NCBI RefSeq assembly: GCF_902713615.1
Contig: NW_024055498.1
Coordinates: forward strand, 4,644,554 to 4,708,553
Direction of reading: 5' to 3'
Length of the DNA stretch: 64,000 nt
Source of the DNA: Scyliorhinus canicula
Lineage: Eukaryota
Under the pieces are notes generated by a model. The model saw nothing but the letters and a program-made list of their open reading frames with translations, was not told where the DNA came from and did no database searches. The position numbers were made by a program, and so were the translations under genes. This document shows positions 10,366 through 64,000 of the stretch, piece after piece; position 1 is the first letter of the stretch; each line of letters begins with the position of its first letter.

Positions 10366-10411
10366 ATGAGGTGGGTCATTTCTCTCAGTTTGTTGCTGAC
10401 TTTCTTATCCC
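10366..10411 (+). CDS. IGHV: IgM VH leader exon
   Basis: MRWVISLSLLLTFLS plus 1 nt; donor gtgagt at 10412. Confidence 0.92.
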
Positions 10412-10540
10412 GTGAGTAGTTTTTATTGTCCAAGTCTCTCACTGTTACTGTCTCAGTGTTAGTCTCTCTCTGGAATGTTCCCAGAGTCACCAATCATTTC
10501 ACCAGCATTAATCCTCGGGCTTTTTGATATATTTTTACAG

Positions 10541-10842
10541 GTGTCCAGTCTGATGTTGTGTTGACTCAGCCAGAGGCAGAGACCGGGCGTCCCGGAGGCT
10601 CCCTGACACTGATCTGTAAAACCAGCGGCTTCAATCTTGGCAGTGGCTACATGAGCTGGTTCCGCCAGCTTCCCGGACAGGCGCTGGAGGGCTTGGTATA
10701 TTACTATAGTTCATCAGACAACATCTATACCCCAGCAATTAAGGATCGATTTACTGCGTCCAAAGACACTTCAAACAACATCTTCTCTTTGGACATGAGG
10801 AACCTAAAGACCGAAAACACCGCCATCTATTACTGCGCAAGA
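10541..10842 (+). CDS. IGHV: IgM VH exon (framework 1 to YYCAR)
   Basis: Acceptor ttttacag. Reads [34 protein letters not shown]...WFRQ...[17 protein letters not shown]...YYCAR with both canonical Cys and Trp; shark IgM VH type. Confidence 0.96.
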
Positions 10843-10874
10843 TACCAGATACCTGGGGTGTGGGGGGGCGGGGG
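10843..10874 (+). other. IGHD: Pre-joined D/junctional segment fused to VH
   Basis: 32 G-rich nt directly after the AGA (Arg) codon, with no V 23-RSS; followed immediately by a 12-RSS. Confidence 0.75.
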
Positions 10875-10902
10875 CACACTAGCTAGTGTCAATACAAAAT
10901 CC
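10875..10902 (+). promoter_or_regulatory. 12-bp-spacer recombination signal (D 3' type)
   Basis: CACACTA + gctagtgtcaat (12) + ACAAAATCC. Confidence 0.85.
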
Positions 10903-11209
10903 CCTCAGCACTAATGAACTGAGGCTGACTCGGTGCTCGCTTTTACAATCCAACTTTATTCATAGTGAAGTATTATTTATATATCCATCTCTGTCCAAAT
11001 GATAAGAAGAAATGTGGAAAATCTGTGATAATTATTCGCCAATCAGTTGGTGATTTCAATAACATGTTCTTAATGTAAAACATTTATGAAGAGCAAGCGA
11101 TATCCACAAATACAATTATAATTTCATGAACATTCACCTTGGCTTTCTTTTGCTGCTGGTTTGTGAATAGTTAAAATAAAGTGGATTTCTGTCTATTTTG
11201 TGCAGGTGC

Positions 11210-11248
11210 GGTTATTGTATGGAACTGCCCAGGGAATGTGACACTGTG
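11210..11248 (+). promoter_or_regulatory. 23-bp-spacer recombination signal of JH
   Basis: GGTTATTGT + 23 nt + CACTGTG (consensus heptamer). Confidence 0.93.
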
Positions 11249-11296
11249 ACTATCTAGACTACTGGGGACAAGGGACCATGGTGACGGTGACTGCAG
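11249..11296 (+). CDS. IGHJ: JH segment
   Basis: YLDYWGQGTMVTVTA (WGxG motif); donor gtaag at 11297. Confidence 0.96.
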
Positions 11297-14200
11297 GTAA
11301 GAACCGTGCAATTATTTACTCACTGTTTTACTTGAGTCTTAGTTTTATATTTTTCTCTAAGTTAACAATTCATTCGTTCGCTGAATTATAGTTTGCTGGA
11401 TTTTGTATTGCGTTGTTTTGCAATGTTTCATACGATTTTGCTGAAAAGGGGAAAGAGAATTATTCTGCCTCTTGACAAAAGTTTCTGTTGAGGGATTCAG
11501 TCCCTGGTTGTTATGATTTGGTGGTTATTTACTGAGGATACTGTGTAGCCGGGTTACTTTCAATATCCAACGACTGTTAAACAGTTTGGCGTTTCTGCTA
11601 TGATTAATCTCGGTGACATCTGGTGGCTGCAAGTTTTACCACCAAGTGTTAAAAATCTAACCCAATATTCACAAAATATGCGAAATTTTCTGTGTTAATT
11701 TATTAAATATGTTCCATTTACGCACAATTTTGCCGCTTTTATTCCACATTTCTGTTTAGGGTAACAATTAATTCACTTGGTGACTGGCGGATTTGGTGGG
11801 TTCTCATTGAGATTGTCTTCAAATGTTATGTTTGATTCTGTTCAAAGTGTTTGTAGAATTGAGCTGCTTCTCCGTGAATCGAGGTTTAACCTCTCGGGGA
11901 TGTAATTTGGTGTTTATCAGCTGAGGAGATTGTGTCTGGGTAACTTTGAATAAGTAAAATCTGTGAAGCGGTGTGACGTTTCAGCATTGTTTCTGTATTG
12001 TTTCTGCATTGTTTGAACTCGATGATATTGAGCGGCTACATGTTTTGTAATTGGATGAAAACAATACACGCGTTTGAAACTGCTTGACGCATGATTATAG
12101 GCTAAAACAGAAGAGATATTAGGTTTTTCAAAAGTACTATTTGCAGATTAAAATAAATTACAGTTTTAGATGCTCCTTCCAAACATAATTTGTTCCTGCT
12201 ATCACAGCCTCGCTTCTCAGCAATGTTTCATCACGGTGGCATCTGATGGTTGCAGCTTTTACCATCTCCTGCAAACATTAAATATTTAAATATGTTTCAA
12301 TATAGCCCAATATGAATAAAATATCGTAAAGTTTCAATATTATTTTTGGACCTGTCCTACTTCCTCACAATGATACTGCTGTTATTCCATATTTTTATTT
12401 ATTTGATAATTCATACATTTGGTGGCGAGCTGGTCTGCTGGATTCGATATTGAGATGTTTTTGAAATGTTACGTTTGATTCTGTTCAATGTGGAATTGAG
12501 CTGCTTCTCCAGCAAACGGGTTTCAGTCCCGCAGTGATGAGTTTTGGTGTTTTCCTGCTGAGGGGATTATGTGTCTGGGTGATTTTAAAAACCGGTTTGG
12601 TGTTTCTACATTGTTTAAACTCGGTGATATTGACAGTTACATGTTTTCTAGTTCAATGCATTCTAATTGTTTGAACCTGCTTGAAACGCGATTGTAGGGA
12701 GAAAAGAGGCAGGTTTCGGAAATGAACAAAATAATTAAAGATATATTCGGGCGTTTTAAAATGTTTAATTGATGATTACAGATTAATCAGAGCGTACCGA
12801 TTCTACAGCAATGTTCAGTTGCACAAGAGATTTTTGCTTTAATTTGTATATCCCCAATAACATTTGCATTTACTTAAATAGGAGTTTAACTTTGCAATTT
12901 GCAATTTATGTGTCCGATTGTTATATTATTTCTGTGCAGCCACAACTATATGATTCTGCTTCTTCATTATGATTCATGATTCCTTCAATGCCATTTGTAG
13001 TTGGATAGTGAGATAATTGTCATTAATCTAATCATAAAGAATTTTCTGCGACCTGGAAGCCACTGACAGTGAAGGAATTGTTCATATGATTTTATTTGAA
13101 TTGGAAGAATGTTCAGACTGCATTGGGCAGGAGATTGACAAGTAAAAGCTTGAAATTCAAAGAGATTAATTTAATTACACACAGTATTAGCTTTGCAATA
13201 AATGATAATACCCTGTTTCGCACAACTGTGCTGTATATGGAATAGAAGTATATGAAAGACAAATTACAGAACAGGAGAAGAGATTATATCTGAGCCGCAT
13301 GCTTATTTATATTAAATATTAAATTGAGTAACAATATCTTTACTCCAGTTGCTCGTCATGTTTAGTTTTGTAGAGGATCTGAATGAACAGTTTTAACTGT
13401 ATTTTACACTAATTAATTTGGATCTCCTTTCATAATAATTTTAATAATTAAATTACAGAGATTAGTCGAGTTATTAAATCTAGGAAGCACTTTAATTGAT
13501 CACAAACAGCCTGCCACTTTATTTATTTATATATATAGTTTATATGCGACAGTTTAGAAACTCGGGAGTCTCGCTTTAACAAACAGATGATGTAATACCA
13601 TCACCTCACAGGGACAGTTTTCGCGATGTCAGCCCAGTTGAAAGTATTTGAAATATTGCACTCATAGACTTATCTTGAGAATTACACTCTGTGAATAGAT
13701 GAAATTCAAGATTTATCAATGCGTTCAGAAATATTAATAGTTAACATTTTTGTAGGTTAATACAGAGCAGTTCAAAACAAAAAAGTAAAACATTAAAACA
13801 TGGTTATTTTTCAGTAAAAATATTATACATGTTTGAATGTTTCCATCCAGTTATTTGTTATTTATTGTTTAGCATCGCTGAAGATTTAATTAAACTCAGA
13901 TGCTGTAACAAACTTCCAGGCAGGAACTAGTTCTGAATTATAGAAAACTCATTTTATTATTTTTATTAGAGTGCAAATAATCTGACAAGACACCTAATTG
14001 ACAATTAACCAACAGGCAATAACATATTTGTACTAACTAATTAAACATAAATGCCCCCCGACAGTCAAGCATTTAGAGAATCTGTAATTGTAACCAAAAT
14101 TAATTTAGAAAACAATAATTTCTTTACTCAGGTGGATGAAGTGTTTCGCCCTGTTTATTTCATTACATTTAATTAATTAATTAGATCAAATCAGCTAATC

Positions 14201-15380: not shown

Positions 15381-16962
15381 TAGAACATAGAACATAGAAC
15401 ATAGAACACTACAGCGCAGTACGGGCCCTTCGGCCCTCGATGTTGCGCCGACCTGTGAAACCATCTGAAGCCTATCTGACCTACACTATTCCATTTTCAT
15501 CCATATGTCTATCCAGTGACCACTTAAATGCCCTTAAAGTTGGCGAGTCTACTACTGTTGCAGGCAGGGCGTTCCACACCCCTACTACTCTCTGAGTAAA
15601 GAAACTGCCTCTGACATCTGTCCTATATCTCTCACCCCTCAATTTAAAGCTATGTCCCCTCGTGTTGGTCATCACCATCCGAGGAAAAAGACTCTCACTG
15701 TCCACCCTATCTAACCCTCTGACTATCTTATATGTCTCTATTAAGTCACCTCTCAGCCTTCTCCTCTCTAACGAAAACAACCTCAATTCCCTGAGCCTTT
15801 CCTCGTAAGACCTTCCCTCCATACCAGGCAACATCCTAGTAAATCTCCTCTGAACCCTTTCCAAAGCTTCCACATCCTTCCTATAATGTGGTGACCAGAA
15901 CTGCACGCAGTACTCCAGGTGTGGCCGCACCAGAGTTATGTACAGCTGCAGCATGACCTTGTGGTTCCGAAACTCAATCCCCCTGCTTATAAAGGCTAGC
16001 ACACCATATGCCTTCTTAACAGCCCTATTAACCTGGGTGGCAACTTTCAAGGATTTATGTACCTGGATGCCGAGATCTCTCTGTTCATCTACACTACCAA
16101 GAATCTTGCCATTAGCCCAGTACTCTGCATTCCTGTTACTCCTTCCAAAGTGAACCACCTCACACTTTTCCGCATTAAACTCCATCTGCCACCTCTCAGC
16201 CAAGCTCTGCAGCTTATCTATGTCCCTCTGTATCCTATAACATCCTTCAGCACTATCCACAACTCCACCGACCTTCGTGTCATCTGCAAATTTACTAACC
16301 CATCCTTCTACACCCTCTTCCAGGTCATTTATAAAAATGACAAACAGCAGTGGCCCCAAAACAGATCCTTGCGGTACACCACTAGTAACTGAACTCCAGG
16401 ATGAACATTTGCCATCAACCACCACCCTCTGTCTTCTTTCAGCTAGCCAATTACTGATCCAAACCGCTAAATCACCTTCAATTCCATACTTCCTTATTTT
16501 CTGCAATAGCCTACCGTGGGGAACCTTATCAAACGCCTTACTGAAATCCATATACACCACATCAACAGCTTTACCCTGATCCACCTGTTTGGTCACCTTC
16601 TCAAAAAACTCAATAAGGTTTGTGAGACATGACCTACCCTTCACAAAACCGTGTTGAGTATCGCTAATCAACTTGTTCTTTTCAAGATGATTATAAACCC
16701 TATCTCTTATAACCTTTTCCAACATTTTACCCACAACCGAAGTAAGGCTCACAGGTCTATAATTACCAGGGTTGTCTCTACTCCCCTTCTTGAACAAGGG
16801 GACAACATTTGCTATCCTCCAGTCTTCCGGCACTATTCCTGTCGACAAAGACGACATAAATATCAAGGACAAAGGCTCTGCAATCTCCTCCCTGGCTTCC
16901 CAGAGAATCCTAGGATAAATCCCATCTGGCCCAGGGGACTTATCTATTTTGACATTTTCTAA
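15381..16962 (-). mobile_element. 5'-truncated CR1 LINE with intact RT ORF
   Basis: 463-aa ORF 15481..16872 (PGNYRPVSL, QHGF, GVPQGSVLGP, KFADD); 3' tail (GTTCTAT)n at 15381-15408. Confidence 0.93.
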
Positions 16963-17915: not shown

Positions 17916-18059
17916 TTCATTTCATTGCACGGTGAAATGATGCACGTTAATTGACAAAGTCAATGGACAACGTATCTGTGAACGATTTAAATGATTGTCC
18001 AACCCATGGTCCGCGAACCGGATTATGCTGACTGAGTCGCCCACACTCACTGTGAGAGT

Positions 18060-20600
18060 GGATGGGAATGTTTGTGGAGTGTGAGGGTGAATGAGAATAT
18101 GGAAACTGGGGGTGAGCCAGGCAGACACATACACTCTTTCACACAAGTACACACACACACTCATACATCTAAATATTCTTTGTCACACATACACTCACCG
18201 TCTCACACACACAGTTCCACTCTCGCTCTCACACACTGCTTCTCTCACACACCCACACACAAACAGACTTTCAAACACTCAGAAAATGCTGGACATTCTC
18301 ATCAGGTCTGACAGCATCTGTGGAGAGAGAAGGGGCAGAAGGAAGTTTTCTTCTCTCTCCAGAGATGCTGTCAAACCTGCTGAGATTTTGCAGTATTTTC
18401 TATTTTTGTTTCAGATTCCAGCATCGGCAATAATTTGCTTTTATCAGACACATTCTCTTGTTCTCTCTCTCACACACAATCTCTCAAAGCACAAATACGC
18501 ACTCTCGTTCTTACCACACTCTCACACACCCACAGAGAAAATGCTCACACACACAAACTTAAACACTTCCTTGCACAGAAATACACTCTCACACAAGTAC
18601 ACATTTTTTGCACTCACACACTTTTTCTCTCTGACCAACTCTCTCTCACGCACACTACCACTCTCTTGGATATTCTGTCAGACACACGAATGTGTCTCAC
18701 ACATACATCATCTCACACCCTCTCATCTCCGCCCCCCTCTCTCCCACATGCACACTCCCACAGATAAATGCGCACACTTTATCTCTTTCACGCACTTACT
18801 TTTCCACACACTCGCATCCAGCCTCTCACACACTGTCTCTCTCCCACACACTCTATTTCTCACACATATCCTTTCTCTCTCTTACACACACTCTCACACA
18901 CACTTATACAAAGGGTCTCTTGCCAACACACACACACACCCTGTCTCTCACATGCTGTCTTTCTCACACACTTTCTGTCACACACTCACACATACTTGCA
19001 CACTCTCCCTTACACACATTGCCAATCTCACTCACCCACTCAGGCCCACACGCTCACTCGCCCTCTTTCAGCCAATGGTATGCTCCCACTCTAACTCATC
19101 AACCCTAACTCACCTGTTCCCTCACCCTCACTCAGTCACACACCCTCACTCACACACACTCACTCACTCACACACTTACTCTCGCACATACTTACTCAAA
19201 TTCACACCATCACTCACTCACACAGACACACTCACAGACACACAATTACTCACTCACACACCCTCACTCACCCTCATTGGCTCACACTTACTAGCCCGAC
19301 CTAAGTCACTCACCTTCACACTACCCTCACCACTCACTCACACACAAACACTCGCTCACAAACCCTCACACACCCTCACTCACCATCACTATCTCACCCT
19401 CATTGACCAACCTAATTCACTCACCTTCACACTACCCTCATCACTCACTCACATTCACCCTCACTCAGTCACCCACCATCACTCACTGACTCACCCACCC
19501 TCACGCGCCCGCCCTCACTCATTTTCGCCCACCCTCATTCAGTCTCTCACCTGACTCAATCACCCATCCTCACTCACTCACCCTCATTCACCCACCCACA
19601 CTGACTCACTCTCACGCACTGACACTGCCCTCGCCCTCATTCACACACCCTCGCTCACCCACATACCCCCATGCACACTCATTTACCCAGCCTTACTCAC
19701 ACACCATCATTAACCCACCCTCTTTCACCCACTCGCACTCACACTCACACACTGTCATTCACTTACATTTACTCACTCACCCTCACTTACGCACACTCAC
19801 TCTTCCTTATTCACCCACACTCACTCACACGCCCTCATTAACTCACTCACCCTTACTCACCCAACCTCATTAAATCACCCTCAGTCACGCACCCACTCAC
19901 ATTCACTGCCTCATTTTCACCCACCCACACTCATTCTCGCCACTCATATCCCTCACTCAACCAAGCTCATCCGCTAATTCTCAGTTAAACACCTCAATCA
20001 CTCAGCCACACTCATACAACCTCATTCATCGTAACTCGTTCACTCTCACTCATTCACCCTCACTCATTCACCCTCACTCATTCACCCTCACCTATTCACC
20101 CTCACTCATTCACCCTCACTCATTCACCCTCACTCATTCACCCTCACTCATTCACCCTCCCTCATTCACCCTCACTCATTCACCCTCACTCAGTCACCCT
20201 CACTCATTCACCCTCACTCATTCACTCTCACTCATTCACCCTCACTCATTCACCCTCACTCACTCACCCTCACTCATTCACCTCACTCATTCACTCTCAC
20301 TCATTCACTCTCACTCAGTCACCCACCCAGTCACTCACCCACAGTAACCCATCCTGACTCTCCCACCCTCACTCACTCACCTTCGCTCTCATGTTCACTA
20401 CACGACTGCACTCACAAACTCAACTCCGAAACTTACTCACTCGGCCTCACTTATTTTCTCTCATTCACTGCCCTCACCCACCCTGAGTCATTCACCCTTA
20501 GTGACACACCCTCACCATTTACCATCACTCAGTCAATCAACCAACTCACTCACCCCCTCTCACTCTCCAACCCTCACTCTGTTACTCACTCATTCTCTTA
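18060..20600. repeat. 2.5-kb C/A-rich low-complexity tract including a 14-bp tandem array
   Basis: Degenerate (CA)/(CT)/(CACT) repeats; unit CACTCATTCACCCT repeated about 19 times at about 20045-20310; very few G on the + strand. Confidence 0.9.
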
Positions 20601-20954
20601 CGCACGGTCCCTAAATCGGTCCCGAATGTCTGCAACGAGAGAGAAAGAGAGAACTGGAGCGGGGCATGAGTTTCGCACGACTGGCGCCCGAAAGTATCTG
20701 TGCGGCCCGGGAGAGGATAGTTCAGAGAGCCGGGAGAAAGCGCCGGAGCCGGAGTAACTTCCAGGGCCAGGGAAAGAACAAGGAGGCGAGGAACAGGGCA
20801 GGAATGGGGGAGGGGGACACAGAGATGTGAGGGACAGAGCGGAGATGTGGGGGGAAACAGAGATGTGGTGAACAGGACAATTCAATTTCCAAAACTGCAA
20901 TGATATAAATGAAGATACAACTTCTTTATCACAAAATGTTGTTGACTGTGAAAT

Positions 20955-21553
20955 ACACAGCTCAGTTAGCTGGATTGTGACGTACATAGCTCAGTTAGCT
21001 GGATTGTGACGTACACAGCTCAATTAGCTGGATTGTGATGTACACAGCTCAGTTTGCTGGATTTGCCGTCCACAGCTCAGTTAGCTGGATTGTGACGTAC
21101 ACAGCTCAGCTAGCTGGATTGTGACGTGCACAGCTCAGTTCGCTGGATTGTGACGTACACAGCTTAGTTAGCTGGATTGTGACGTACACAGCTCAGTTAG
21201 CTGGATTGTGACGTACACAGCTCAGTTAGCTGTATTGTGACGTACACAGCTCAGCTAGCTGGATTGTGACGTACACAGCTCAGCTAGCTGGATTGTGACG
21301 TACACAGCTCAGCTAGCTGGATTGTGACGTACACAGTTCAGTTAGCTGGATTGTGACGTACACAGTTCAGTTAGCTGTATTGTGACGTACACAGCTCAGT
21401 TAGCTGGATTGTGATGTACACAGCTCAGATTGCTGGATTGTGACGTACACAGCTCAGATTGCTGGATTGTGACCTGCACAGCTCAGTTAGCTGGATCCTG
21501 ACGTACACAGCTCAGGTAGTTGGATTGTGACGGACACAGCTCAGTTAGCTGGA
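20955..21553 (+). repeat. 29-bp tandem array (about 20.7 units)
   Basis: Consensus ACACAGCTCAGTTAGCTGGATTGTGACGT; the last unit runs directly into a SINE head. Confidence 0.95.
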
Positions 21554-22065: not shown

Positions 22066-22365
22066 CGACACCGTCTCCGCCCACTCTCTACAGCCTGGTC
22101 TCCTCCTGTCAGCAACACAACACCGATGGCTCCGTGACCTACGGTTGTTTGGCGATGGACTACTCCCCAGAAATCACCAGACTTACCTGGAAGAAAGATG
22201 GGCAGCCGATCACCACTGGTGTTAAGAAATACCCGTCAGTGAGAAACTTGAAGGGAACCTACACCCTGAGCAGCCAGTTAACCATCACCGAGTCAGAGGG
22301 GGGATGCAGCAAAATCAGCTGTGAGGTTCGACACAGAGGCTCAGACAAGAGCATTGGAATGAAAT
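22066..22365 (+). CDS. IGHM: Cmu1 exon
   Basis: Acceptor ctcccag. [17 protein letters not shown]...[10 protein letters not shown]...LTWKK...[16 protein letters not shown]; donor gtaagt. Retains the N-terminal Cys (SSCQQ) at the position used for light-chain bonding. Confidence 0.95.
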
Positions 22366-23179: not shown

Positions 23180-23491
23180 GTGGTGGAAATGACATCCCTC
23201 CAAATGTTCTCCTCACCGTGAGTTCCAATGAAGAAATCTCAAGCAAGAAATTTGCAACCATCGTCTGTTCAATCAACAATTTCCGTTCAAACTCAATTAA
23301 CGTGAAGTGGCTGAAGAATGGACAACCCATGGGTTCAGGAATTGTCACCTCTCCCGCCTATGAAGTGAACGGGAACTTCTCAGTGAGCAGTCGGCTGACA
23401 GTCTCCGCTGGGGAATGGTTCAGCAAAGCGGTCTATACCTGCCAGGTCACTCATCAAGAGGTCACCCAAAGTCTGAACATCGCCTCGTCTG
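23180..23491 (+). CDS. IGHM: Cmu2 exon
   Basis: [14 protein letters not shown]...TIVCSI...VKWLKNG...[19 protein letters not shown]; AG/GT boundaries. Confidence 0.95.
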
Positions 23492-23598
23492 GTAAGAGAC
23501 ACAAACAGAGGAAACAATAAATCATCCTGCATTCTGCTGTTAATCCAAATCAGGAATTTACTGAAGTTAGTACAAAGCACAGAATAACTTCTATTTTA

Positions 23599-25079: not shown

Positions 25080-25388
25080 ATCCTTCCGTTTGCACTGATG
25101 CCTCAGTAACAATACTGTCACCACCAATAGAACAGGTCTTACTGGAGGCGACTGTCACCTTAACCTGCGTCATTTCGAATGCTCCTTTTGGAGTCACCGT
25201 GTCCTGGAGTGAAGCGAAGAAGCCGCTGAAATCAGAGATTGCCGACCAGCCTGGGGCAGATACTGAGAGCGTGGTCAGCAAATTAAACATCTCGACACAA
25301 GCCTGGCTGAGTGGGGCTGAGTTTGAATGTGTGGCGAGCCATCAGGACCTGCCAACTCCTTTAAGAATTTCAATCCACAAAAAAATAG
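25080..25388 (+). CDS. IGHM: Cmu3 exon
   Basis: [31 protein letters not shown]...VSWS...[22 protein letters not shown]; donor gtgag. Confidence 0.95.
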
Positions 25389-27428: not shown

Positions 27429-27820
27429 ATCCCAATCCGCGGGAACCGTCCGTCTCTGTCCTCCTGCCCTCGGCTGAAGACGTCTCCGCTCAGAGATTCG
27501 TCTCCCTCAGCTGCTTAGTGAGAGGTTTCTCCCCCCGAGAGATCTTCGTCAAGTGGACCGTCAATGACAAGCCGGTGAATCCCGGCAACTACAAGAACAC
27601 CGAGGTGATGGCGGAGAACGGCAATAGCTCCTTCTTCATGTACAGCCTGTTATCCATTGCAGCGGAGGAGTGGGCCAGCGGCGCTTCTTACTCCTGTGTG
27701 GTGGGACATGAAGCCATCCCCTTGAAGATCATCAACAGAACGGTTGATAAATCCAGCGGTAAACCCAGTTTTGTGAACATTTCCCTCGCTCTGATGGACA
27801 CCGTTAATTCATGTCAATGA
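27429..27820 (+). CDS. IGHM: Cmu4 exon plus secretory tailpiece
   Basis: [19 protein letters not shown]...[16 protein letters not shown]...[11 protein letters not shown]...DKSS|[20 protein letters not shown]. Internal donor at 27759 for the membrane form; tail has an N-glycosylation sequon and a penultimate Cys. Confidence 0.97.
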
Positions 27821-27847: not shown

Positions 27848-27862
27848 AATAAAAATAATAAA
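27848..27862 (+). terminator. Secretory-form polyadenylation signals
   Basis: AATAAA at 27848 and 27857, 28-37 nt after the stop codon. Confidence 0.8.
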
Positions 27863-31040: not shown

Positions 31041-31055
31041 ACTCATTGACATAAT

Positions 31056-35208: not shown

Positions 35209-35336
35209 ATGCCACAGACCACACCTGGACTGAAGACAATGAGGATGATAACGGGAACATCTGGACAACCGCTTCCACATTCATCACCCTGTTCTTCCTG
35301 AGCATGTCCTACAGCGCTGCAGTCACTCTGGTGAAG
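35209..35336 (+). CDS. IGHM: IgM transmembrane exon TM1
   Basis: DATDHTWTEDNEDDNGNIWTTASTFITLFFLSMSYSAAVTLVK; acceptor cgtag, donor gtgag; not in the ORF track because it has no ATG. Confidence 0.93.
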
Positions 35337-35476: not shown

Positions 35477-35485
35477 ATCAAGTGA
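35477..35485 (+). CDS. IGHM: IgM TM2 exon (IK*)
   Basis: Polypyrimidine acceptor ctctcttttacag followed by ATC AAG TGA. Confidence 0.85.
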   Translation: MK

Positions 35486-36809: not shown

Positions 36810-39800
36810 TGATGGAACCATCAATTCACTAGACACGTGCTTTAAGATATGAACAGTGGTTTTAATCTACTTACTACAGAGCCAGCCTGTTACCCGTTGA
36901 ACTCTCGATGCACTGCAGGCTGGCTCTGGACAAGGGTATTTATACAGTAGTCCAGGAGAAGGCGTCGTGGGCGGAGCCAATGCTGGAGCCCTGTACAAAC
37001 TCCTGAGCATTCCCAACCCTACTCCCCCTCGTGGTTGGAAAACGCTACTGCGCTTACAATGGTATTGGTAAATACAGTGTGAATTACTAAGTTACATTCA
37101 CCACATTCATCCCCTGCACAAAAATCAAGTCCAGCGGGGGTGGTGGCCTACCAAGTAAGTCTGTCCGGTGGTCGAACTTCCCGCTGTGATCTGCAGAGCC
37201 CCGGGGTCGCAGCCTCTTGCGGAGGCTGGATGGGTGTTGTGTGCTGGGGTATGATGGCGGACTCCAGGGAGGGTTGTGTCCGAGCTTCATACTCTTCTGG
37301 TTCGACCACGGACTGGGGGCGCTGGGGGCTGGCCGGCATGGGTGCGCGGAACTGGTGGAGCGAACTCGAGCACTCGGGAGCGCGAGGGGGCGGCAGCATG
37401 GGGTGTAGGGTGAGAGGTCTTTCTGTGGGGGTAGAGGGGATGCTGGATCTGGCGGGTGCCAGATCCCGGAGGGATACCGTGTCCTGACGGCCGTCAGGGA
37501 ACTCGACGAATGCATACTGGGGGTTGGAGTGGAGCAGGCGCACCTTTTCAACAAGGGGTCGGTTTTGTGTGCCCTGATATGTTTCCTCAGAAGTACGGGG
37601 CCCGGCGTCCTCAGCCATGCCGGAAGTGAGACCCCCGTGGTAGTGCCCCTGGAAAAAATGAAGAGCCTCTCGTGAGGGGTCTGGTTGGTCGCCGTGCACA
37701 AAAGGGACCTAATAGCGTGGAGCGGGTCTGGGAGTACCTCCTGCCACTGGGAGACATGGACCTTTCTAGACCACAGGGTCAGTAGGACGGTCTTCTAGAC
37801 CGTCACGTTCTCCCTTTCTACCTGCCCGTTCCCCCTGGAGTTGTAGCTGGTAGTCCTGCTCGAGGCAATGCCCTTGACGAGCAGGAACAGAGGCAGCTCG
37901 TCGATCATGAAGGACGAACCCCGGTCGCTGTGTACGTAGCTGGGGGAACCAAACAGGATGAAGATGCTATGCAGAGCCCTATTGACTGTGTGGGAGGTCA
38001 TGGAGGTCACGCCCCGGACAGGCGCCGGAATGTGGCGACTAGGGGCTTTTCACAGTAACTTCATTGAAGCCTACTCGTGACAATAAGCGATTTTCATTTA
38101 ATTTCATTTCATTTTTCATTTCATTTCATTCATTTCATGTCGGGGCACGGGATAGCGAATGGGAAACGGGAGAACTCGTCTACAGCGTTTAAAAAGTAAA
38201 CATTCTTGTTAGTTGAGGGGTGCCCTTTGAAATCAATCGCGAGGCGTTCAAAGGGCCTAGAAGCCTTGACCAGGTGGGCCCTGTCTGGTCTATAGAAGTG
38301 TGGTTTGCACTCCGCACAGATCGGGCAGTCCCTGGTGACCGCTTTTACCTCCTCTTTGGAGAAAGGCAGGTTTCGGACCCTGATGTAGTGGGCGAGCCAT
38401 GTAACCCCCGGTGGCAGAGGTCATTGTGGATGACTTGTAATCGGTCGATCTGCGCGCTGGCGCATGTCCCGCAGGATAGGGCATCCGGAGGCTTGTTGAG
38501 CTTCCCGGGTCGATATCGTAATTATGTGCAGAGTTCGATCCTCCACCTCAGAATTTTGTCGTTTTTAATTTTGCCCCTTTGCGAGTTGTTGAACATGAAG
38601 GCAACCGATCTTTGGTCGGTGATGAGGTTAAACCTCCTATCTGCGAGGTAGTGCCTCCAGTGACGGATAGCCTCCACAATGGCTTGTGCTTCTTTCTCGA
38701 CAGAAGAGTGTCGGAGTTCTGAAGCGGAGAGGGTACGGGAGAAAAATGCAACTGGTTTCCCTGCCTGATTTAACGTGGCTGCAAGAGCGACCTCTGAGGC
38801 GTCGCTCTCTACCTGAAATGGAGTGCATTCAGCCACCGCCCACATGACCGCTTTGGCGATGTCCTCCTTGATGCCGTCGAAGGCCTGGCGTGCCTCGGCT
38901 GACAGGGGAAATCGTGTGGCCCTAAAGAGTGGGCGGGCTTTGTCCGCATATTGAGGGACCCACTGGGCGAGTAGGAAAAGAAGCCCAAGCACCGTTTGAG
39001 GGCCTTTGGGCAATGGGGGACGGGGAGTTCTAAGAGGGGCCGCATACGGTCCGGGTCTGGGCCCAGGACTCCGTTTTCCATGACTTAGCTGAGTATAGCT
39101 AGTCTGGTTGTGCGGAAAACGCATTTCTCCTTGTTGTACGTGAGATTCAGTTTCTGTGCCGTCTGGAGAAAACGGTGGAGGTTGGTGTCTTGGTCCTGCT
39201 GGTCATAGCCACAGATGGTGACATTGTCCAAGTACGGAAACGTGGCCCGCAGCCCGTACTGGTCCACCATTCGGTCCATTGCTTGTTGGAACACCGAGAC
39301 CCCATTAGTGACGCCGAAAGGGAGCCGGAGGAAATGGAAGAGGCGGCCATCGGCCTCTAATAACATGCAGTGGCGGTCCTCCGGGCGGATTAGGAGCTGG
39401 TGGTATGCAAACTTCAGATCCACCGTGGAAAAGAGCCGGTACTGGGCGATCTGGTTTACCATGTCTGTAATCCTGGGGAGGGGATACGCGTCGAGGAGCA
39501 TCAATCTATTTATGGTCTGACTGTATTCGACCACCATACGGAATTTGTCCCCGGTCTTAACGACCACCACCTGACCTCTGCTCTGACAAATACCCTATCC
39601 TGCAGGCTATACCGCCTGCTACGAGTGGCTACAGGTTTACAATGACTTAATTCCCTAGCCTTTCCCATCATCATCTTATGATGTAACCTCATTGGAGAGA
39701 CATTCCGTGCTTTGCCAGTCCAGATTGCTCATGTACAATGGAGAAAAAGTCTAAAAGTTAGGGTTAGGGTTAGAGTCCCAAGACACTTGCTTGTTGGTAT

Positions 39801-41610
39801 TTTTGTGAGATTGGCGAAGAGAGGAGGGGGATTCACAGCATAGCGAGGCTCCAGATCCTGAGTGGGGGCAGGGGCCCTCCGAAGCTGAGGGTGAGGCTCT
39901 TGAGGTGACATTGGAAGTCTAGGCTTAATAAGAGTGGCGTGCAGAGTTTGGGCAAAACGTAGAGTTTGAATTTCGAGTAGCTAGAGCCTCGGATTGTGAG
40001 TGTCGCAGTGGTGCGCCCCTGAATCTGGACCGAATGGGAGCCTGAAACGAGCGAGATAGTTTGCTACACGGGGAAAACTGGGAGCGAACAGCATCTTACC
40101 AGGTCTGGATGTATGAAGCTCTCCGTGCTCCCGGAGTCGAAGAGGCAAGGCGTTTTGTACCCGTTGATATGGACCTCTGCCATCGAGTTTTGTAGATTCT
40201 TTGGTCGTGATTGGTCCAGAGTGACCGCGCTGAGTTGCGGGTAGTCGGCGGCTCAATCAACTGTGCTGGAGTGGCCCCTTGATGACTGCCCTCTGAGTTC
40301 ATAGTCGAATTCGAATTCTTCCACAGAGTTCTCCGAGCGCGGAGATGCCGATCGGGCCCGTGGATCGCATGTGGCGGGCGGCGAGGAAGATGGCGTCCAA
40401 GATGGCGGCCCCCATGAGTGGCACGTGGCCTGCCACGTGGTGGAGGTTTTCCAAGATGGCGGCCCCCACGGATCGCACGTGGCTGGAGGGGGCGGAGTCG
40501 GGGCATAGGCTGCAGCGTTTCGGGCCCCGCTGTCCTGCGAATGAGGGGAGCGATTACTTTGAGTCGCTGGGGAGTTGCAAGCTGGGGCCCTTTTAGCAAG
40601 GCACACTCTTGCGTAATGGCCTTTTCGCCCGCAGCTGCTGCAAGTCGCGTTGCGGGCCTGGCAGTGCTGCGCAGGTGCTGGTTCTGACCACAGAAATGGC
40701 AGGCTGGAGCAGCGTAGTGGCTGGGCGACCGTGTAGCACAGGCCTGGGGGAGTCGCAGGTCGGGGGCCCATGATTGGGTCGCGGGGTCCGCGGGGAACGA
40801 GTTAAGGCTGCGGAAGGAGACCCCCATCGTGGGCCCCCTTTTCCAGCAGTCCTTGGCGCACATAGTTAGACTTGAGGCCCACTACAAAAACATCGTGTAC
40901 CGCACAGTTCCTGTGTTCAGCTGCGCTAGCCGCTTGGTAATTATAGTCATTGGACAAATTATTGAGTTCCGTTAGAAATTCGGTGAGTGATTATGTAGGC
41001 CGCTGGCAGCGAGTTGTGAACATTTGGTGAGCGTAAACTTCATTAATAGGCCTTACATAAATTTTATCGAGAACTGATAGCACCGCAGTATATGAACTGG
41101 CCGAGTTTAGTTGCGTAGAGATTCTGTGGCTCACTCTCACGTGCAGTAGACTTAGCTTCTGATCCTCAGTCGTTTCGGCTGTGCTCGCTTCTGCCAGGTA
41201 GGCCTTGAAGCACCGGATTCAGTGGGAGAAGATTTCTTTAGCCTCTGCATCCTGCGGGTCGAGTTCCAGGCGTCCAGGCTTGATCGTTACTGTTCTTAAG
41301 TCGATTAAATTGATGGAACCATCAATTCACCAGACACGTGTTTCCGATATGAATCTAGGCTTTAATCGACTTACTTCAAAACCAGCCTGTTACCCGTTGA
41401 TGAACACTTAGTGAACTCAGGCTGACGCTGGACAAGGGTATTTATACATCTGCATTAGGGGGAGGAGTCGTGGGCGGAGCCAAGGGTGGAGCCCAGTACA
41501 AGTTCCTGAGTACTCCCAGAGCTACTCCCCCTAGTGGTAGGATAGCGCTACTGCGCTTATAAAGACAGTGTGAATTATCATATATACATATATATATTAC
41601 ATTCACCACA
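36810..41610 (-). mobile_element. Ty3/Gypsy LTR retrotransposon, degenerate and possibly chimeric
   Basis: TG...CA LTRs at 41311-41610 and 36810-37105; polypurine tract at 37106-37115; gag/zinc knuckle (CHFC...CSSC), RT (YPLP, FPYLDNVTIC), RNase H (QVESDAS, LITDQRS), integrase (HSDRGSSF). SINE inserted at 38016-38138. Confidence 0.92.
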
Positions 41611-41906
41611 GTGTCCACTCGGATGTCGTGTTCATTCAACCAGAGGCAGACAGTCAACAAACCGGAAGACTGGCCTGCAGAAGCAGCGGGGTCAGTCTTG
41701 GAAATCAGCGAATGTCCTGGTACCGGCAGACTCCCGGTCAAGCTCTGCACTGGATACTTTCCTACTGTGGCGAAGGCAGCAAGCAGTACAATCCACAGTT
41801 TTCGGGACGCTTTACTGCTTCCAAAGACCTTTCAAAGAATATATTCGCTCTGGATATCAAGGGCTTGAGACCGGAAGGCAGCGCCATTTATTATTGTACG
41901 CGGGAC
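41611..41906 (+). pseudogene. Leaderless IgH-like V segment (candidate TCR-associated Ig-like V)
   Basis: VHSDVVFIQPEA...LAC...WYRQTPGQALHWIL...RFTASKDLSKNIFALDI...YYCTRD; acceptor replaced by the LTR end; FR1 is 3 aa shorter than the VH at 10.5 kb. Confidence 0.85.
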
Positions 41907-41945
41907 AACAGTGAGACAGATCAGAGGCATACTTGTACAAAAACT
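41907..41945 (+). promoter_or_regulatory. 23-RSS with mutated heptamer
   Basis: AACAGTG + 23 nt + ACAAAAACT; the first C of CAC is lost. Confidence 0.85.
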
Positions 41946-45455: not shown

Positions 45456-45495
45456 ATGTTCAGCCTCCTGGTTGTGTGGGGAGCATTACTGGCAG
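45456..45495 (+). CDS. TRDV: TCR V leader exon
   Basis: MFSLLVVWGALLA plus 1 nt; donor gtaat. Confidence 0.85.
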
Positions 45496-45602: not shown

Positions 45603-45911
45603 ATCTGAGCCATGGAGATTCTGTCACTCAGCCTACCTCCTCGGAGGTTAAGACAGAAGGAGGAGGGGTGACTTTAAACTGTACCTATGATACTACTTTG
45701 AGCAGCTATAGCTTACTCTGGTACCGTCAACACCCAGCCACTCATCCCACATATATAATCAGGAAAGATTCTGGTGGTTATGAAGACAAAGCAGGTTTTG
45801 CTAAAGATCGTTTCTCTGTAGATCTCCAGACATCGAAGAAATTCATCAGTTTAACTATATCGAGGCTGACGCTGACTGACGCTGCCGTGTATTATTGCAC
45901 TTTCTGGAATA
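45603..45911 (+). CDS. TRDV: TCR alpha/delta-type V exon, intact
   Basis: DLSHGDSVTQPTSSEVKTEGGGVTLNCTY...LLWYRQHP...KDRFSVDLQTSKKFISLTISRLTLTDAAVYYCTFWN. Alpha versus delta usage cannot be told from germline sequence. Confidence 0.85.
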
Positions 45912-45950
45912 CACAGTGATATGAAACAGCCTCATCCCAGTACAAAAACT
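45912..45950 (+). promoter_or_regulatory. 23-RSS, near consensus
   Basis: CACAGTG + 23 nt + ACAAAAACT. Confidence 0.95.
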
Positions 45951-57813: not shown

Positions 57814-60800
57814 TCACCGGGTAATGCAAGCAGCGAGTGTGGCGAAGGGAAACCTCAGTGCATTCTTCAGCTGATCTCGGAATTTGGTCTGGGTTACCGC
57901 ATAGATAAAAACATTGGTGCAAGAGCTGAGCAGCTGGAGCATGTTCGTTGTCTCTTGAAGGATGAACTGCGGGTTGTTAAAATCTAGCCCGGTGAAATAG
58001 GCCTCACCCGTAATCTGCACGTAAAGGAAATGTCCCACATAGGTGACCCAGAGGAGGAGGAAGCTGAGAGAGATGGCGAAGAGCAGGACGATTGACCTCT
58101 TGCGGTTGACCATCTCCGGGTCTCCGTGAATTTCGGAGCTCTTGAGCCTCCTGCGGGCTCTGCTGGCCTCTACAATGTGCCTTACAGTCAGCGCATTGAG
58201 CAGCAGAATGAGGAGGAATGGGAGAAATGGCGTTAGGATGCGGTCAAGCCAGTCATAGGCCTGCCAGGCGGACAAGGTGTAATAAATGGACTTGATGTCG
58301 CAGAACCAGCGCACCCCGTCCAGGATGTACAATGGCTGGTAGCTGAAGTAGAAAGGAATGTTCTTGACACAGCTCAGTGAGCAGACAATTCCTATGACCA
58401 ACAATGCAGTTTTCTCAGAACAGTATCTAGTTTTCAGGCTCTGACAGCAAATGGCCACAAAACGGTCGATGGTGAAAGCGACGGTCAGCCAGACTGAACC
58501 ATCCCGGGTGGCATAGACCAGCACAGTGCTGACCGCGCATCCGGTGGTGGTGGACAGGGCACTTTCCCGGAAGTAGATTCCGCCAATCCGGTTGAGGATG
58601 ACGGCGGTGATGATGACTAGGAAATCGCTCACCGCTATCGCCACCAGGTAGTAGGTGATGCATCGTGAGAGTCCGCACCGTCCTCTGGATAAGATGACGA
58701 TCGCCACCAAGTTGGCTGTGAGACATAAAGAGAGAGAGAGATTCAAAAGAGGACTCAAAACACCAGCCTCATCTGATCAATTCTGAAACCTCCTAACCCG
58801 CTTGAGATCGATTCAGATTCCAACTATTCCAAACCCCAGGCCATTTCTTTGATGTTCAATTCTGGAGAAGATATTTGCTTTAATGTAATACTTTTGGGGC
58901 AGAAAACGTTGTCATCTGTCGCCAAAAATAACGCCGTTCTCTCGCATCCTCTGAGGCTTCAGATCCTTTATAATGTTGCCCTCCTGTTTCATCTTCAGAT
59001 GATCCCTGGTCCCCATATCGATTGTACAGCACCCACACTGCTTACTTCCAGCATTGACCAAAACATCGCGCAGCAGACACCTACCTTAGGTTAACTGCGA
59101 ATTAAATTCTTCCCGATGGCATTGTGAAAACTTGATTCTAACAAGAGGAAGACTATCTTGGCGTTCCCCCAGTTTGGGTTGTTACTGTACTTAAGCTCAT
59201 CTGAGACACTTAATGACAATTTCCTTCCTCACAAGAAGTCTCTGCCATCGATCACTGCTATATTTTGCCACCTACAATAAATCATAGCTCAGAAACATAT
59301 TGAATTTAATATCCTCAATCTTATTTTCAAATCCCTCCACAGCCTTTCCACTCTTTAAATTTAGATTTATTGTCACGCACACCGATGTACAGTGGAAAGT
59401 ATCGTTCTCCGTACAGTCCAGGCAGATTATTCCATGCATGATGAAATCATATGACATACGATAAATGCAAAATGTAAATACATAGACCACGGGCGAAGCA
59501 TATGTAGAATAGTGCGACAACTGCAGAGAAGATGTGTAGAGAGATCTGTTCAGTCAATAAGAGAGTCATTCAGGTGTTTGGCAACAGCGCGGAAGAAGCT
59601 GTTTTTGAACATGTCATTGCGTGTTCTCAGACTTTTGTATCTTCTGCTCGATGGAAGAGGTTGGAAGAGACAATAACCCGGGTGAAGGGTCTTTGATTAT
59701 GCTGCCCGCTTTCCAAAGGCAGCAGAAGGTGTAGGCAGAGTCAATGGATGGGAGGCGTCTCAGTTTCTTACGGTCTTGGGCCGAGCAGTTGCCATATCAG
59801 GCTGTGATGCAGCCAGATAGGATGCTTTCTATGGTGCATCTGTAAACGTTGGTAAGCGTGAATGCACACATGCCGAAGTTTATACTTTCCTGAGACGTAT
59901 AGGCGCTGTTGTTAGTACTTGGTCGTTGTGGCTTTGTGGATGGACGAGGGTTGTTGGTGATGTATCCCTGTTACCTCCTGCAACACTGTTAGGCACAGCC
60001 ATCTACTATCTTGTGTACCCAGGAAATAAAATGCTCCTTAAGTCGCCATTGTGCTGTTAGCTGCCGAATCCTTAATGTCTGCGATTCCCTACCTCGAGAG
60101 CTCTGCCTCTTTCCCTCATTAACACTCAGCTTAAAACCTACTCGTTTGATGCAGCGGTTGGTCATCTGTCCGAATTTCTCATTAGGTTGCTGATAGTAAA
60201 GTTTGTTTGAAAAATCTGTTGTGAAGCTCCCTTACCGCACGGCCCTTTGTGGTACAGGAAACATGGTTGAACTCTAACTTGTCAAGTAGAACCAAGAGAT
60301 AGGGAATATATGTTGACCTTGGTAGAGAATCATTAATTTCTCGTGAATCCATAAAAATATTATTATGATGCGTACAACAATAAATGAAATGTACGAAATC
60401 CTACCAGCTGTGATGCTGCACTTACCTGCGATCAATTAATACATTTTATCTCACCATTCATCGAATATTGCACTGTAATAAATGAATGGCGCGTTTTCGT
60501 AAAATTAATATATTGCATTGAATTTTACTGCACTGTGATTCGCCATTGTTCCATGCAACATTGCAAGTCGAGATTGCATTTTATTACATGGGAGTCTTGT
60601 ATTGTGACACAATGCAAGTGGAAATAATAAACATGAATTCATCCTAAAGCAATGCAGTGTTCTATCTTTCATCACTATGCAAGAACCCAGTTGAAGTTCC
60701 TCAAACATCACTGAAACAATACAGCGGCAACACGGTGACATAGTGGTTAGCACTGCTGCCTCACAGCGCCAGGAACCTGGGTTCGATTCCGAACTTGGGT

Positions 60801-61223
60801 GACTGTGAGGATTGTGCACGTTCTCCCCGTGTCTGCTTGGCTTTCCTCTGGGTGCTCTGGTTTCGCGCCACAGTCCAAATATGTGCAGGTTAGGAATATT
60901 GGCCGCACTAAATTGTCCCTTAGTATCCAAAGGTGAAGTTACGTGATTGGATGGGAGCGAGGGCCTAGGTTTGGGTGCTCTTTCGGAGGGTCGGTGGAGG
61001 CTCGATGGGCCGAATGACCGCCTTCTGTAATGAAGGGATTCTATGGACTGCATATTTCGAAAATAAATCAGACTCACCCCGTAATGGAACATACAAGTGT
61101 GGAGATGATTTACAAAGTAAAAGCTAAGAATTTATTTGGAATAGATGACTTACCCGGGACACCAATAACGGCGAGGACAGGATAATAAACGGCATAAAAC
61201 GGTCCATTCGCTGGCCCGTGCAT
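57814..61223 (-). CDS. Two-exon class A GPCR, GPR139-like family, 323 aa
   Basis: Exon 1 61223-61154 (MHGPANGPFYAVYYPVLAVIGVP, donor gtaagt); exon 2 58715-57814 (acceptor ctcacag, ANLVAIVILSRG...IDRFVAIC...NVFIY). In frame, seven hydrophobic segments. The ORF-track start at 58758 is intronic. Confidence 0.88.
59350..59950 (-). mobile_element. LINE 3' fragment (Rex1/Babar-like) in the GPCR intron
   Basis: Minus strand reads ESILSGCITA*YGNCSAQDRKKL-like. Confidence 0.55.
60725..61050 (+). mobile_element. tRNA-derived SINE in the GPCR intron
   Basis: tagtggttagcactgctgcctcacagcgcc head and ggttcgattcc B-box. Confidence 0.7.
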
Positions 61224-63532
61224 TTTTTTTCTGAAATGAAGGGAATCCTCAAAGCTATACACCTGAGCACTGGAACACATTAAAAGCGTCCATCATTTAT
61301 ACAGGGTGAAAGTCTCCAGAGCGTCAATTAAGTTACAACATGTGCCTTAGTTACAGTTCGATAAACAAACAAATTAGCTTACGATCCACGCCTCCCAGTT
61401 GCAACATTGGCAAGGTGGGTGGTTCCATATCTTTGTGGGCGAACTGCTGGTTGCCAATTCTGCGCTCCAACATGAAACAGTCCTGCCAAACCACGCCTTG
61501 GCGTCTCCATTGGTGGATTCCCTGATGGTATGTTCTGAGGTCCTATTGCTAACATTAGATCCGCTTGCCATTTCCACCGTGTTTCCAAATATTTCAGACT
61601 TTGAAGTGTCAGATTAGATCATATGTTTGGTTCATTGGGAAGTGTTTCAGTTTTAATGTTTCGTAAGCATCAAAAGATATATAACTGAGTAATTAATCAT
61701 GATTTAGCTGACATGGCTGGATATCTGACATGGAGGCCATGCAAATGCTGGGCCATATGAGAAGGGTACACATTATCCATTATGGTACGTTCAATGCTGA
61801 GCTGTAAAATGGCCGGTAGAAGAACAGCTTATGTGAATGAGGTGGGCAGTTGGTTGGCGCAGAGCTGAAACGATGGCCAAACTGAGGCGAATCGGAAATG
61901 TTAAGAACATAAGTAATAAATTAGGTGACATTGGGGCTCTGCGGCAAAATTGCAGGTTCAACTTTGTAATAGATTGACCACTGCGACGTTACGTTGTAAC
62001 TAAGAAAATGCAGGAGAATTGTTTATCAATGCTGATAACGCTAGTAAAAGATCTATACCCTAATCATGTGCTTGAGTTCTGCTTAAAATCTTAATTGAGA
62101 AACATTCAATTAATATTACTCTTTCAGAATATTTTTAAAGATTTGACGTGTCTTGATATTAGATAGAGCTGTAACCTGAATATTATTTGCATGTTTTCCC
62201 GGTTTCTGCGTGGCTCTCCTCCGGGTGCTCCTGTTTTTTGCACAGTCCAGAAATGTGCAGATTAGCTGGATTAGCCATGATCAATGCGCGAGGTTATGGT
62301 GATAAGGTGGGCGAGTGGACCGAGGTCTCGAGTTCTTTCGCAGGGTGGGTACGAACTCGATGGACTGAATGGTCTCCTTCTGCGATATCGGGATTATATG
62401 GATATTGACAGCATATTTGTGCTTGATCTGACATTGCTGACGATGACTTTAATGATCAGCATCATCGGCCTCTCTAGGAATACTACCGGCTGAAGAGACT
62501 TTTGTTTACATTAACAGTGCTATACAGTACACGTTTTTCGCGAGGTAGCTAAGTATAAACAATTTCATGCTATTTGTTGTTCGGCCTGTCAGGTTAGCGA
62601 AAATACATTCAAGAATAGCATTCAAAATCTGAAGAAAATTAGATAAACATTTAACGTGCAAACCTTGTGTATGAAGTAAAACACTGTGTGTGTGTATTCG
62701 TTATTCCCGGTGCACCAGATGAGATTTATTTCTTTGACTGGACATTCTGGCTCAGGGGCAACCAGTACGGAACTGCTCTGAGGTCGATTAAACCGACGAC
62801 CCCCTTTTTGTGGTGTATGACCAGTTCATGTCTGCGTGGCTTACAGTTAACAAACTGGTGTGAGTTAACCCGAAATCCTCAAGTTCGTTTTTAAAATTAT
62901 CTTCTCTCCTTTCCATACCTCTTTAGATTGTTGAGCAGGCCTATTTCTATCTTTCCCGGATATTGGCAATGTCAGGGGCGTGTCTACTGCTATAACTCGA
63001 TCCTCAGGCGCTGGACTCAGGGAATTGTCAGGTCTAAGGCCTTTGGATCAAAGGTTTTGAATTGAAATCTCACCAGCCCATTTAGAATGATGTTTAATCA
63101 TTTGCGGCAAAGTCAGCTCTGAAAGGAGCCAGACCGACACGAAACGTTAACTCTATTTATTTGTTCGCAGATTCCACCGGGCCAGCTGAGATTATCCAGC
63201 ATTTTTTGTTGTAAATACAATTGTAAAGTGAGATTCTACCATATCCCACCCTCAAAACATGCCGCTTACTAAACACATAAAAGCGGACCGACAGATTATT
63301 ACTGTGGGGGCAATGAGGGAGGCAGGCTTTATCAACAGAAACAACTGAAAATCCCTCACCAACCCGGTGGGCCACTGAACAACACACAAATGAGCTAGCT
63401 TCACGTCAGGCTTACAGACTCGACGGATGACATGAGACCGCAGGTTCCTTTATAAGCCTGTCACTTATTCACAGAACGCACACTCAGAGAGACACAGGGC
63501 ACCTTGTGACCCATCGGGAATACGCGGCACAC

Positions 63533-63546
63533 CGTCATTTGCAAAT
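63533..63546 (+). promoter_or_regulatory. Candidate promoter element: half-CRE overlapping a palindromic octamer-like site
   Basis: CGTCA + ATTTGCAAAT, about 120 bp upstream of the leader ATG. Confidence 0.4.
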
Positions 63547-63663
63547 CAGCACTGCCCCCTAAAGTATTTCAGTCCCGCTCTGAGGCCCACTCTCCCAGAG
63601 CAGTCCGAGTCTGCAATGTCCATCTCCCCGTCATATAGAGCATCAGCTCCAAGCAGCAGAACG

Positions 63664-63706
63664 ATGGAAATCCTCTTTGTTTTCATCCTTTGTGCCGTCT
63701 TACCCC
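63664..63706 (+). CDS. NAR-TCR-type V leader exon
   Basis: MEILFVFILCAVLP plus 1 nt; donor gtgagt. Confidence 0.85.
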
Positions 63707-63844
63707 GTGAGTACGATAAGACTATCCCATGTTCTGTGGATAAAGCTTCCCGAGTCCATCCCAATTACAGACACTGTCTCGGGTTTCAGCCCCGTTGTGG
63801 TTGGGCGCTGATGGTCCATTAAACTGTCTCTGTTTAATTTCCAG

Positions 63845-64000
63845 GATGTTTGAGTCAGTCAGTGACACAGAGCCCGTCAGCGGTTAACAGGGAGGACTGC
63901 CAGTCTCTTACCATAAACTGTGTTTTCAGTGCTGGTTACCGGGGTTATTTCAAATCTGGGAATTTCTTTCGACAATCTCGGACCGGGAGAAGTTGGTCGC
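63845..64000 (+). CDS. NAR-TCR-type V exon, 5' half (truncated by window end)
   Basis: RCLSQSVTQSPSAVNREDCQSLTINCVFSAGYRGYFKSGNFFRQSRTG: IgNAR-like SLTINCV, an extra FR1 Cys, and F in place of the canonical W. Not in the ORF track. Confidence 0.8.

Follow-up and report, generated by a model that had tools for sequence, protein, structure and literature searches.

Does the genome of a shark keep a whole antibody gene among the variable segments of a T-cell receptor (TCR) locus, and, if it does, could that gene lend its variable region to the TCR delta chain? The question is raised by a stretch of 64,000 nucleotides from Scyliorhinus canicula (contig NW_024055498.1; the whole 64-kb stretch is called the window below), on which a preliminary description had placed a full IgM unit, an immunoglobulin heavy-chain (IgH)-like variable (V) segment, a TCR V and a NAR-TCR V, all on the + strand. 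We found each of them near the place given, and, as assembled, a whole IgM gene does lie in cis with V segments of TCR alpha/delta type and, it seems, of NAR type, in keeping with the shared B- and T-cell receptor locus that had been proposed. We consider it very likely that the window is a piece of an elasmobranch antigen-receptor complex, in which IgH mini-clusters stand amid TCR alpha/delta-type V segments and NAR-TCR cassettes. The arrangement is of a kind already known: Flajnik et al. (Sci Adv 2025; PMC12227049) described IgH clusters in linkage with TCR alpha/delta for four elasmobranchs, with TCR-type V exons between them, and the window is an example of this known type and not a discovery. 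In the literature beyond that paper, we found no work that goes further on how genes of B- and T-cell receptors are mixed. The DNA of the window is vertebrate, with about 44% G+C, no N and many retroelement fragments; all receptor features are on the + strand, and statements of absence below refer to these 64 kb.

The IgM cluster carries the first part of the answer. It had been described as complete and apparently intact, and at the level of the sequence it is both, the exon model from 10366 to 35485 being open and its splice sites canonical. The intron between leader and V is 129 bp long with GT..AG ends, and the splice from 10411 to 10541 is present in RNA-like contigs of two runs. The V itself is 75–80% identical to heavy-chain V (VH) sequences of other sharks (Scyliorhinus torazame, Chiloscyllium punctatum and Heterodontus francisci, HV01_HETFR). 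Exons 1–4 of the constant region (Cmu1–Cmu4) have AG/GT borders and phase 1 at all junctions; the secretory tail of Cmu4 has an NIS and a penultimate Cys and is followed by AATAAA at 27848 and 27857, while the donor of the membrane form (G/GTAAA, after 27758) lies inside the same exon. The conceptual secreted and membrane mRNAs are each open to a single terminal stop, with every intron AG/GT.

Something that had gone unmentioned is that the V of this complete unit is joined to a diversity (D) element in the germline. The V proper stops at 10842 (CAR), and the exon runs on for 32 further bases (10843–10874) that are fused, D-derived and open in frame. The distance from V to the joining segment (J; JH in the heavy chain) is about 370 bp, of which some 300 bp separate the recombination signal sequence (RSS) of the VD from that of JH, and neither inspection of the sequence nor the RSS scan turned up a free D element between V and JH. 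Because the V is fused to D and no free D element accompanies it, the cluster is, judged from its sequence, of the germline-joined "VD-J" type. Clusters of this class have long been known in cartilaginous fish, and VD-J genes are on record for the horned shark. Germline-joined immunoglobulin genes of sharks, and rearrangement in germ cells, are among the matters treated by Lee et al. (J Exp Med 2000; PMC2193156). A mu chain would need no more than one 12/23 join, between the pre-fused VD and the cluster's own JH, and ordinary splicing on to Cmu1–Cmu4; the resulting chain would end either in the secretory tail or in the two transmembrane exons (TM1 and TM2). The second framework region (FR2) of the V (10657–10695) has Phe, Ala and Gly in place of the Val, Gly and Trp usual in VH, and its motif reads WFRQ…LEGLV against the usual WVRQ…LEWLV.

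The V segments downstream of the cluster carry the other part of the answer, and they differ greatly in their state. The TCR V, called V3 here, is 66–68% identical to two V-only proteins of Chiloscyllium and forms a clade with them apart from VH with support of 100/100, a clade that rests on these two shark relatives, neither of them named as a TCR. Its matches among one-domain structures in PDB are TCR alpha and V-delta1. On these grounds and those given in Table 1, V3 looks like a functional TCR alpha/delta V.

The IgH-like V, V2, shares 49% identity with the IgM V and 29% with the TCR V; in the tree it sits inside the VH clade, at the end of a long branch, and its best matches in PDB are VH and nanobodies. 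The first framework region (FR1) is three residues shorter than that of the IgM V. The right long terminal repeat (LTR) of a Gypsy-type retroelement ends one base before the V2 exon, where CA stands in place of the AG of an acceptor (the exon starts with GTGTCCACTCG at 41611, to be compared with GTGTCCAGTCT at 10541 in the IgM V), and, because the LTR abuts its exon, V2 has neither leader nor acceptor. RAG cleavage needs CAC at the coding border. In the 23-type RSS of V2 this CAC has been lost from the heptamer, and the signal was missed by the CAC-anchored scan of the window, which recovered the RSSs of the IgM VD, of JH and of V3 only. V2 looks like a dead relic of a TAILV-like segment or of a VH; the IgH-like V that had been reported is indeed present, but as an intact segment it does not hold up, its leader, acceptor and working heptamer being absent.

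Of the NAR-type V, the leader and the first 52 codons lie within the window. Over these codons, the closest solved structure is the VNAR 3B4, a weak match (E = 0.011) with the SLTINCV motif in common; Pfam gave no match to the 52-codon piece, which is short. The framework reads CQSLTINCVF, with an extra Cys in FR1 (REDCQSLTINC). At the position of the near-invariant Trp41 there is a Phe (GNFFRQS), and 52 codons are too short to judge function. A near-octamer, ATTTGCAAAT, lies at 63537–63546, about 120 bp upstream of the leader. A tblastn search of the window with receptor domains gave no V or C (constant) exon beyond those listed in Table 1.

Table 1. Receptor exons, recombination signals and the intervening Gypsy element, by position in the window
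Feature	Position	Strand	Sequence or character	Basis
IgM leader exon	10366..10411	+	MRWVISLSLLLTFLS, phase 1, GTGAGT donor	sequence and exon model
IgM VH exon, germline-joined to D	10541..10874	+		Pfam V-set E = 6e-18
12-spacer RSS behind joined VD	10875..10902	+	CACACTA-12-ACAAAATCC	sequence, RSS scan
JH 23-spacer RSS, facing VD	11210..11248	+	GGTTATTGT-23-CACTGTG	scan: heptamer 7/7, nonamer 8/9
JH segment	11249..11296	+	YLDYWGQGTMVTVTA, WGQGT; donor G/GTAAG	
Cmu1 exon	22066..22365	+		Pfam C1-set E = 1e-13
Cmu2 exon	23180..23491	+		Pfam C1-set E = 2e-19
Cmu3 exon	25080..25388	+		Pfam C1-set E = 1e-8
Cmu4 exon	27429..27820	+	with secretory tail and stop	Pfam C1-set E = 1e-21
TM1 exon	35209..35336	+	…NIWTTASTFITLFFLSMSYSAAVTLVK, …TTASTFITLFFLSMSYSAAVTLVK; conserved antigen-receptor transmembrane motif	motif search, in-frame membrane model
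TM2 exon	35477..35485	+	IK-stop; poly(A) signals 35718 and 35925	
Degenerate Gypsy-type LTR retroelement	36812..41610	-		Pfam RVT_1 E = 2e-16, RT_RNaseH E = 9e-25
IgH-like V exon (V2)	41611..41906	+		Pfam V-set E = 2e-12
Defective 23-RSS of V2	41907..41945	+	AACAGTG-23-ACAAAAACT	sequence
V3 leader exon	45456..45495	+	MFSLLVVWGALLA	sequence
V3 V exon	45603..45911	+	open; Cys23, Trp41, YYC	Pfam V-set E = 7e-15
Canonical 23-RSS of V3	45912..45950	+	CACAGTG-23-ACAAAAACT	sequence, RSS scan
NAR-type V leader exon	63664..63706	+	MEILFVFILCAVLP	sequence
NAR-type V exon, first 52 codons, to window end	63845..64000	+	…SVTQSPSAVNREDCQSLTINCVFSAGYRGYFKSGNFFRQS…	sequence

Linkage of this kind invites the thought that the antibody cluster is a source of V segments for TCR delta, and the preliminary description had suggested as much. 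The recombination signals argue otherwise. The joining of a VH to D-delta pairs the 23-RSS of the VH with the 12-RSS of D-delta. In the IgM cluster the VD carries a 12-RSS and JH a 23-RSS; these two are a compatible pair with each other, and the VD signal does not pair with the 12-RSS of a D-delta. Because the 23-RSS that would follow a free V has been replaced by the 12-RSS of the fused D, the IgM V should be unable to join D-delta or J-delta. Under the 12/23 rule it would make a poor donor for TCR delta, joining only its own JH or some other J with a 23-RSS. Nor does the suggestion fare better with V2, which is the only Ig-like V with a 23-type signal here and has the AACAGTG heptamer in addition to its missing leader and acceptor. 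For linked and mixed maps such as this one, a caution would follow, namely that some Ig V segments near TCR genes may be barred from TCR delta by the type of their RSS.

Several observations weigh against reading the window as a piece of the antigen-receptor complex with an intact antibody gene in it, and they are taken here together with the alternatives that they favour. To begin with, the tblastn search and the RSS scan found no D, J or C of a TCR within the 64-kb window. PSMB5 and UrIg2, which in the complex of Flajnik et al. share a chromosome with the D, J and C segments of TCR alpha/delta, are absent from the window as well. The window had been taken for the V end of the TCR alpha/delta locus, and it may instead be a zone of IgH clusters in which TCR-type V exons are scattered, perhaps at too great a distance from D-delta, J and C to be used, or on another scaffold. 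The published maps give this account some substance, as Flajnik et al. (PMC12227049) placed TCR alpha/delta-type V exons between IgH gene clusters, and the missing D, J and C segments are what it would lead one to expect. V3 speaks on the other side: the survival of its leader, open frame and perfect 23-RSS hints at selection for use. We regard this account as a real possibility, if a somewhat improbable one, and continue to favour the reading as a piece of the antigen-receptor complex. On that reading, the arrangement would stem from local duplication inside the complex and, if D, J and C segments of a TCR lie downstream, a deletional join from a V upstream of the cluster would excise the IgM gene in T cells.

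The remaining doubts concern the cluster's own activity and its linkage to the V segments. For the former, we aligned one raw RNA run and three sets of RNA-like contigs, drawn from three studies, to positions 10300–11400. Depth was confined to the leader, the V and the J, the pattern that spliced mRNA of rearranged genes should give; it was high over JH, and joints from V to J landed there in the RNA-like runs. These junctions comprised eight different sequences at three joint positions, in every case with an exit from V at 10839–10842 and 24–39 unrelated D/N letters in between. The recovered joints therefore come from conventional paralogous clusters that have FR3 and JH words in common with this one. 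The V/J family is heavily expressed and rearranged, and the RNA-like contigs carry the D of other clusters and not that of the cluster under study. The cluster's own joined D (10855–10891) had zero depth in all four runs, a result to be read with the knowledge that contig sets lose rare transcripts and that zero depth is not evidence of silence. In the two deep runs, X36 and X18, words from FR2 and the second complementarity-determining region (CDR2) of the cluster were about 240- to 1900-fold rarer than shared FR1 words and stood at about the level of the intergenic DNA between V and J; X25 was too shallow for the comparison. X25 did hold one contig of 180 nt that, but for a single mismatch, fits the IgM V from CDR1 to the end of FR3. 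The mapping of RNA onto this cluster, which the preliminary description had called for, bore out expression of the family and left the stretch that identifies this member uncovered.

The cluster might accordingly be a structurally intact relic, silent or nearly so among many duplicated clusters and contributing nothing to the B-cell repertoire. Besides the uncovered D stretch, which is in no contig of the three RNA-like runs, and the rarity of its V-specific words, this account can point to the regulatory side, no canonical octamer having been found within 460 bp upstream of the IgM leader, to the unusual FR2 and to introns lengthened by transposable-element insertions (about 10.8 kb between J and Cmu1 and about 7.4 kb between Cmu4 and TM1). 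It has to contend, however, with exons that are open, splice sites that are canonical, two RSSs in each of which CAC and a good nonamer are preserved, and membrane and secretory ends that are intact, all of which would be unexpected after long neutral decay. The single X25 contig also speaks against silence, and, with rare transcripts dropped from contigs, absence is weak proof. A silent relic appears to us unlikely, and we keep to the view that the cluster is an apparently intact gene.

As to linkage, the sole physical connection between the IgM cluster and V2 and V3 is the Gypsy element, whose LTRs, each of about 300 bp (approximately 36812–37105 and 41310–41610), are only about 80% identical overall and which has no target-site duplication at its ends (ACAGG on the left, GTGTC on the right). 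The interior is on the - strand, with reverse transcriptase (RT) at 39085–39567 and RNase H at 38522–39121, the frames being broken; the TG…CA LTRs enclose a gag-like open reading frame (ORF), RT and RNase H in collinear order on that strand, and the whole of about 4.8 kb is of normal size. The diverged LTRs and the lack of a target duplication fit an old element one flank of which was later lost, a product of recombination between two elements or a join that the assembler made through a repeat, and a collinear interior of normal size does not distinguish these three scenarios. Just upstream of the left LTR, where the lost leader of V2 might have been expected, there is only one stretch from ATG to GTAAG (upstream of 36812); the peptide that it encodes is not hydrophobic, and we rejected this candidate as proof of contiguity. 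That the assembly misjoined the IgM side (up to 36.8 kb) and the side of V2, V3 and the NAR-type V (from 41.6 kb) through repeated Gypsy copies is nevertheless very improbable in our judgement: in its favour are the dissimilar LTRs and unmatched flanks, the odd breakpoint that a right LTR ending directly at the start of the V2 exon would make, and DNA runs of low-coverage short-read contigs, holding less than 0.4 of the words, that are unable to span the 4.8-kb element, and against it are the canonical, collinear interior of normal size, the sufficiency of old age alone as an explanation of the LTR divergence, and the publication of the same arrangement for four species (PMC12227049).

The long introns of the IgM cluster and the DNA around its V neighbours hold a number of further repeats. 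In the J-Cmu1 intron, about 2.7 kb of C/T-rich low-complexity repeats with a strong C skew (18036–20750, +; units like CTCACTCACCCACC; GC skew -0.64) produce long spurious ORFs. The same intron holds, 0.5 kb upstream of Cmu1, a tandem array at 20947..21553 (+) with 21 copies of a 29-bp unit, TGTGACGTACACAGCTCAGTTAGCTGGAT, which match at 91% and contain AGCT (Tandem Repeats Finder). Just 3' of the secretory end there is another array, with a period of about 52/102 bp (28409–28969, +) and a heptamer-like CCACTGTAC in each unit. Farther into the Cmu4-TM1 intron, a block of long ORFs of 148–276 amino acids on the - strand (29400–34550) has no Pfam match; it probably represents some repeat or retroelement not yet characterised, and it extends this intron to 7.4 kb. 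Sequences of LINE type are spread over the window: an ORF of 462 amino acids at 15481–16872 (-) matches RVT_1 with E = 9e-36, and pieces like RT or endonuclease were recognised by eye only at 23571–24144 (+), 42975–44402 (+), 47345–49012 (+) and 2–874 (-). Of these fragments, one is within the intron between Cmu2 and Cmu3, and two are in the DNA that separates V2, V3 and the NAR-type V.

One protein-coding stretch of another kind lies between V3 and the NAR-type V. At 57814–58758 (-) there is an intronless ORF of 313–314 amino acids for a seven-transmembrane protein (Pfam 7tm_1, E = 4e-21), whose nearest Atlas clusters are labelled "probable G-protein coupled receptor 139". With its initiator Met missing and a stop just upstream, the ORF is probably a 5'-truncated copy. 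In mammals, the TCR alpha (TRA) locus has olfactory receptor genes beside its V end. We considered the ORF, at 57.8–58.8 kb, as a synteny marker for TRA and rejected it, the sequence being GPR139-like and not that of an olfactory receptor.

The linkage of antibody and TCR genes in sharks matters for what it explains, namely the chimeric receptors of Ig V and TCR delta and the somatic hypermutation of shark TCRs, and it suggests an origin for the IgH translocon of tetrapods, a case that has been in print since 2025. To this the window adds an example at the level of single bases and two cautions: some "TAILV-like" V segments appear to be dead copies, and a linked Ig V need not be able to supply TCR delta, the type of RSS here being one that should forbid it. 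A bolder idea is that the IgM clusters, the V segments of TCR alpha/delta and the NAR-TCR cassettes together make up a single composite repeat, of which the genome has acquired many copies by amplification. We find this decidedly doubtful. If it were true, the genes of B- and T-cell receptors would duplicate together, the "trans-rearrangements" of Ig V to TCR delta would be ordinary deletions in cis, and T cells that join a V of an upstream cassette to D-delta would, as a matter of routine, cut out entire IgM genes; the germline joining of VD, with its change from a 23-RSS to a 12-RSS, would then be a lineage lock that bars the V of a cluster from the TCR delta repertoire. What novelty is left lies in VD-joining as such an RSS "lock" and in co-amplified units of IgM, NAR-TCR and TCR V, both of them ideas that reach beyond the evidence of a single window.

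Set beside the systems already described, the window resembles most closely the antigen-receptor complex of Flajnik et al. (PMC12227049). Here as there, whole IgH mini-clusters stand in cis with TCR alpha/delta-type V exons, a V that seems to be of NAR-TCR type is present and there are V domains intermediate between Ig and TCR; some of the V domains reported in that paper are likewise intermediate in sequence, and the linkage was used there to explain the rearrangement of Ig V to TCR delta, a rationale that is the same for both. The paper works at the scale of gene models, whereas the window resolves one unit to the base, with a VD-joined cluster behind a 12-RSS, a crippled V2 and a retroelement at the junction. 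From the VD-J clusters of other sharks, the IgM cluster does not differ in kind: it has the V fused to D-derived sequence, the single pair of 12- and 23-RSS and the one JH a few hundred base pairs away. V2 recalls TAILV in being an IgH-like V with a 23-type RSS among TCR-type V segments and in its identity of about 50% to the IgM VH, and departs from it in lacking a leader and an acceptor and in its AACAGTG heptamer. VH-delta segments within TCR alpha/delta loci, finally, are on record for frogs, birds, monotremes and the coelacanth (cited in PMC12227049), and they share with the window the placing of an Ig-type V in cis with TCR delta or, in the window, with V segments of TCR alpha/delta type. 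Those animals moved V segments only, whereas in the shark the neighbour of the TCR segments is a whole immunoglobulin gene, with its constant and membrane exons.

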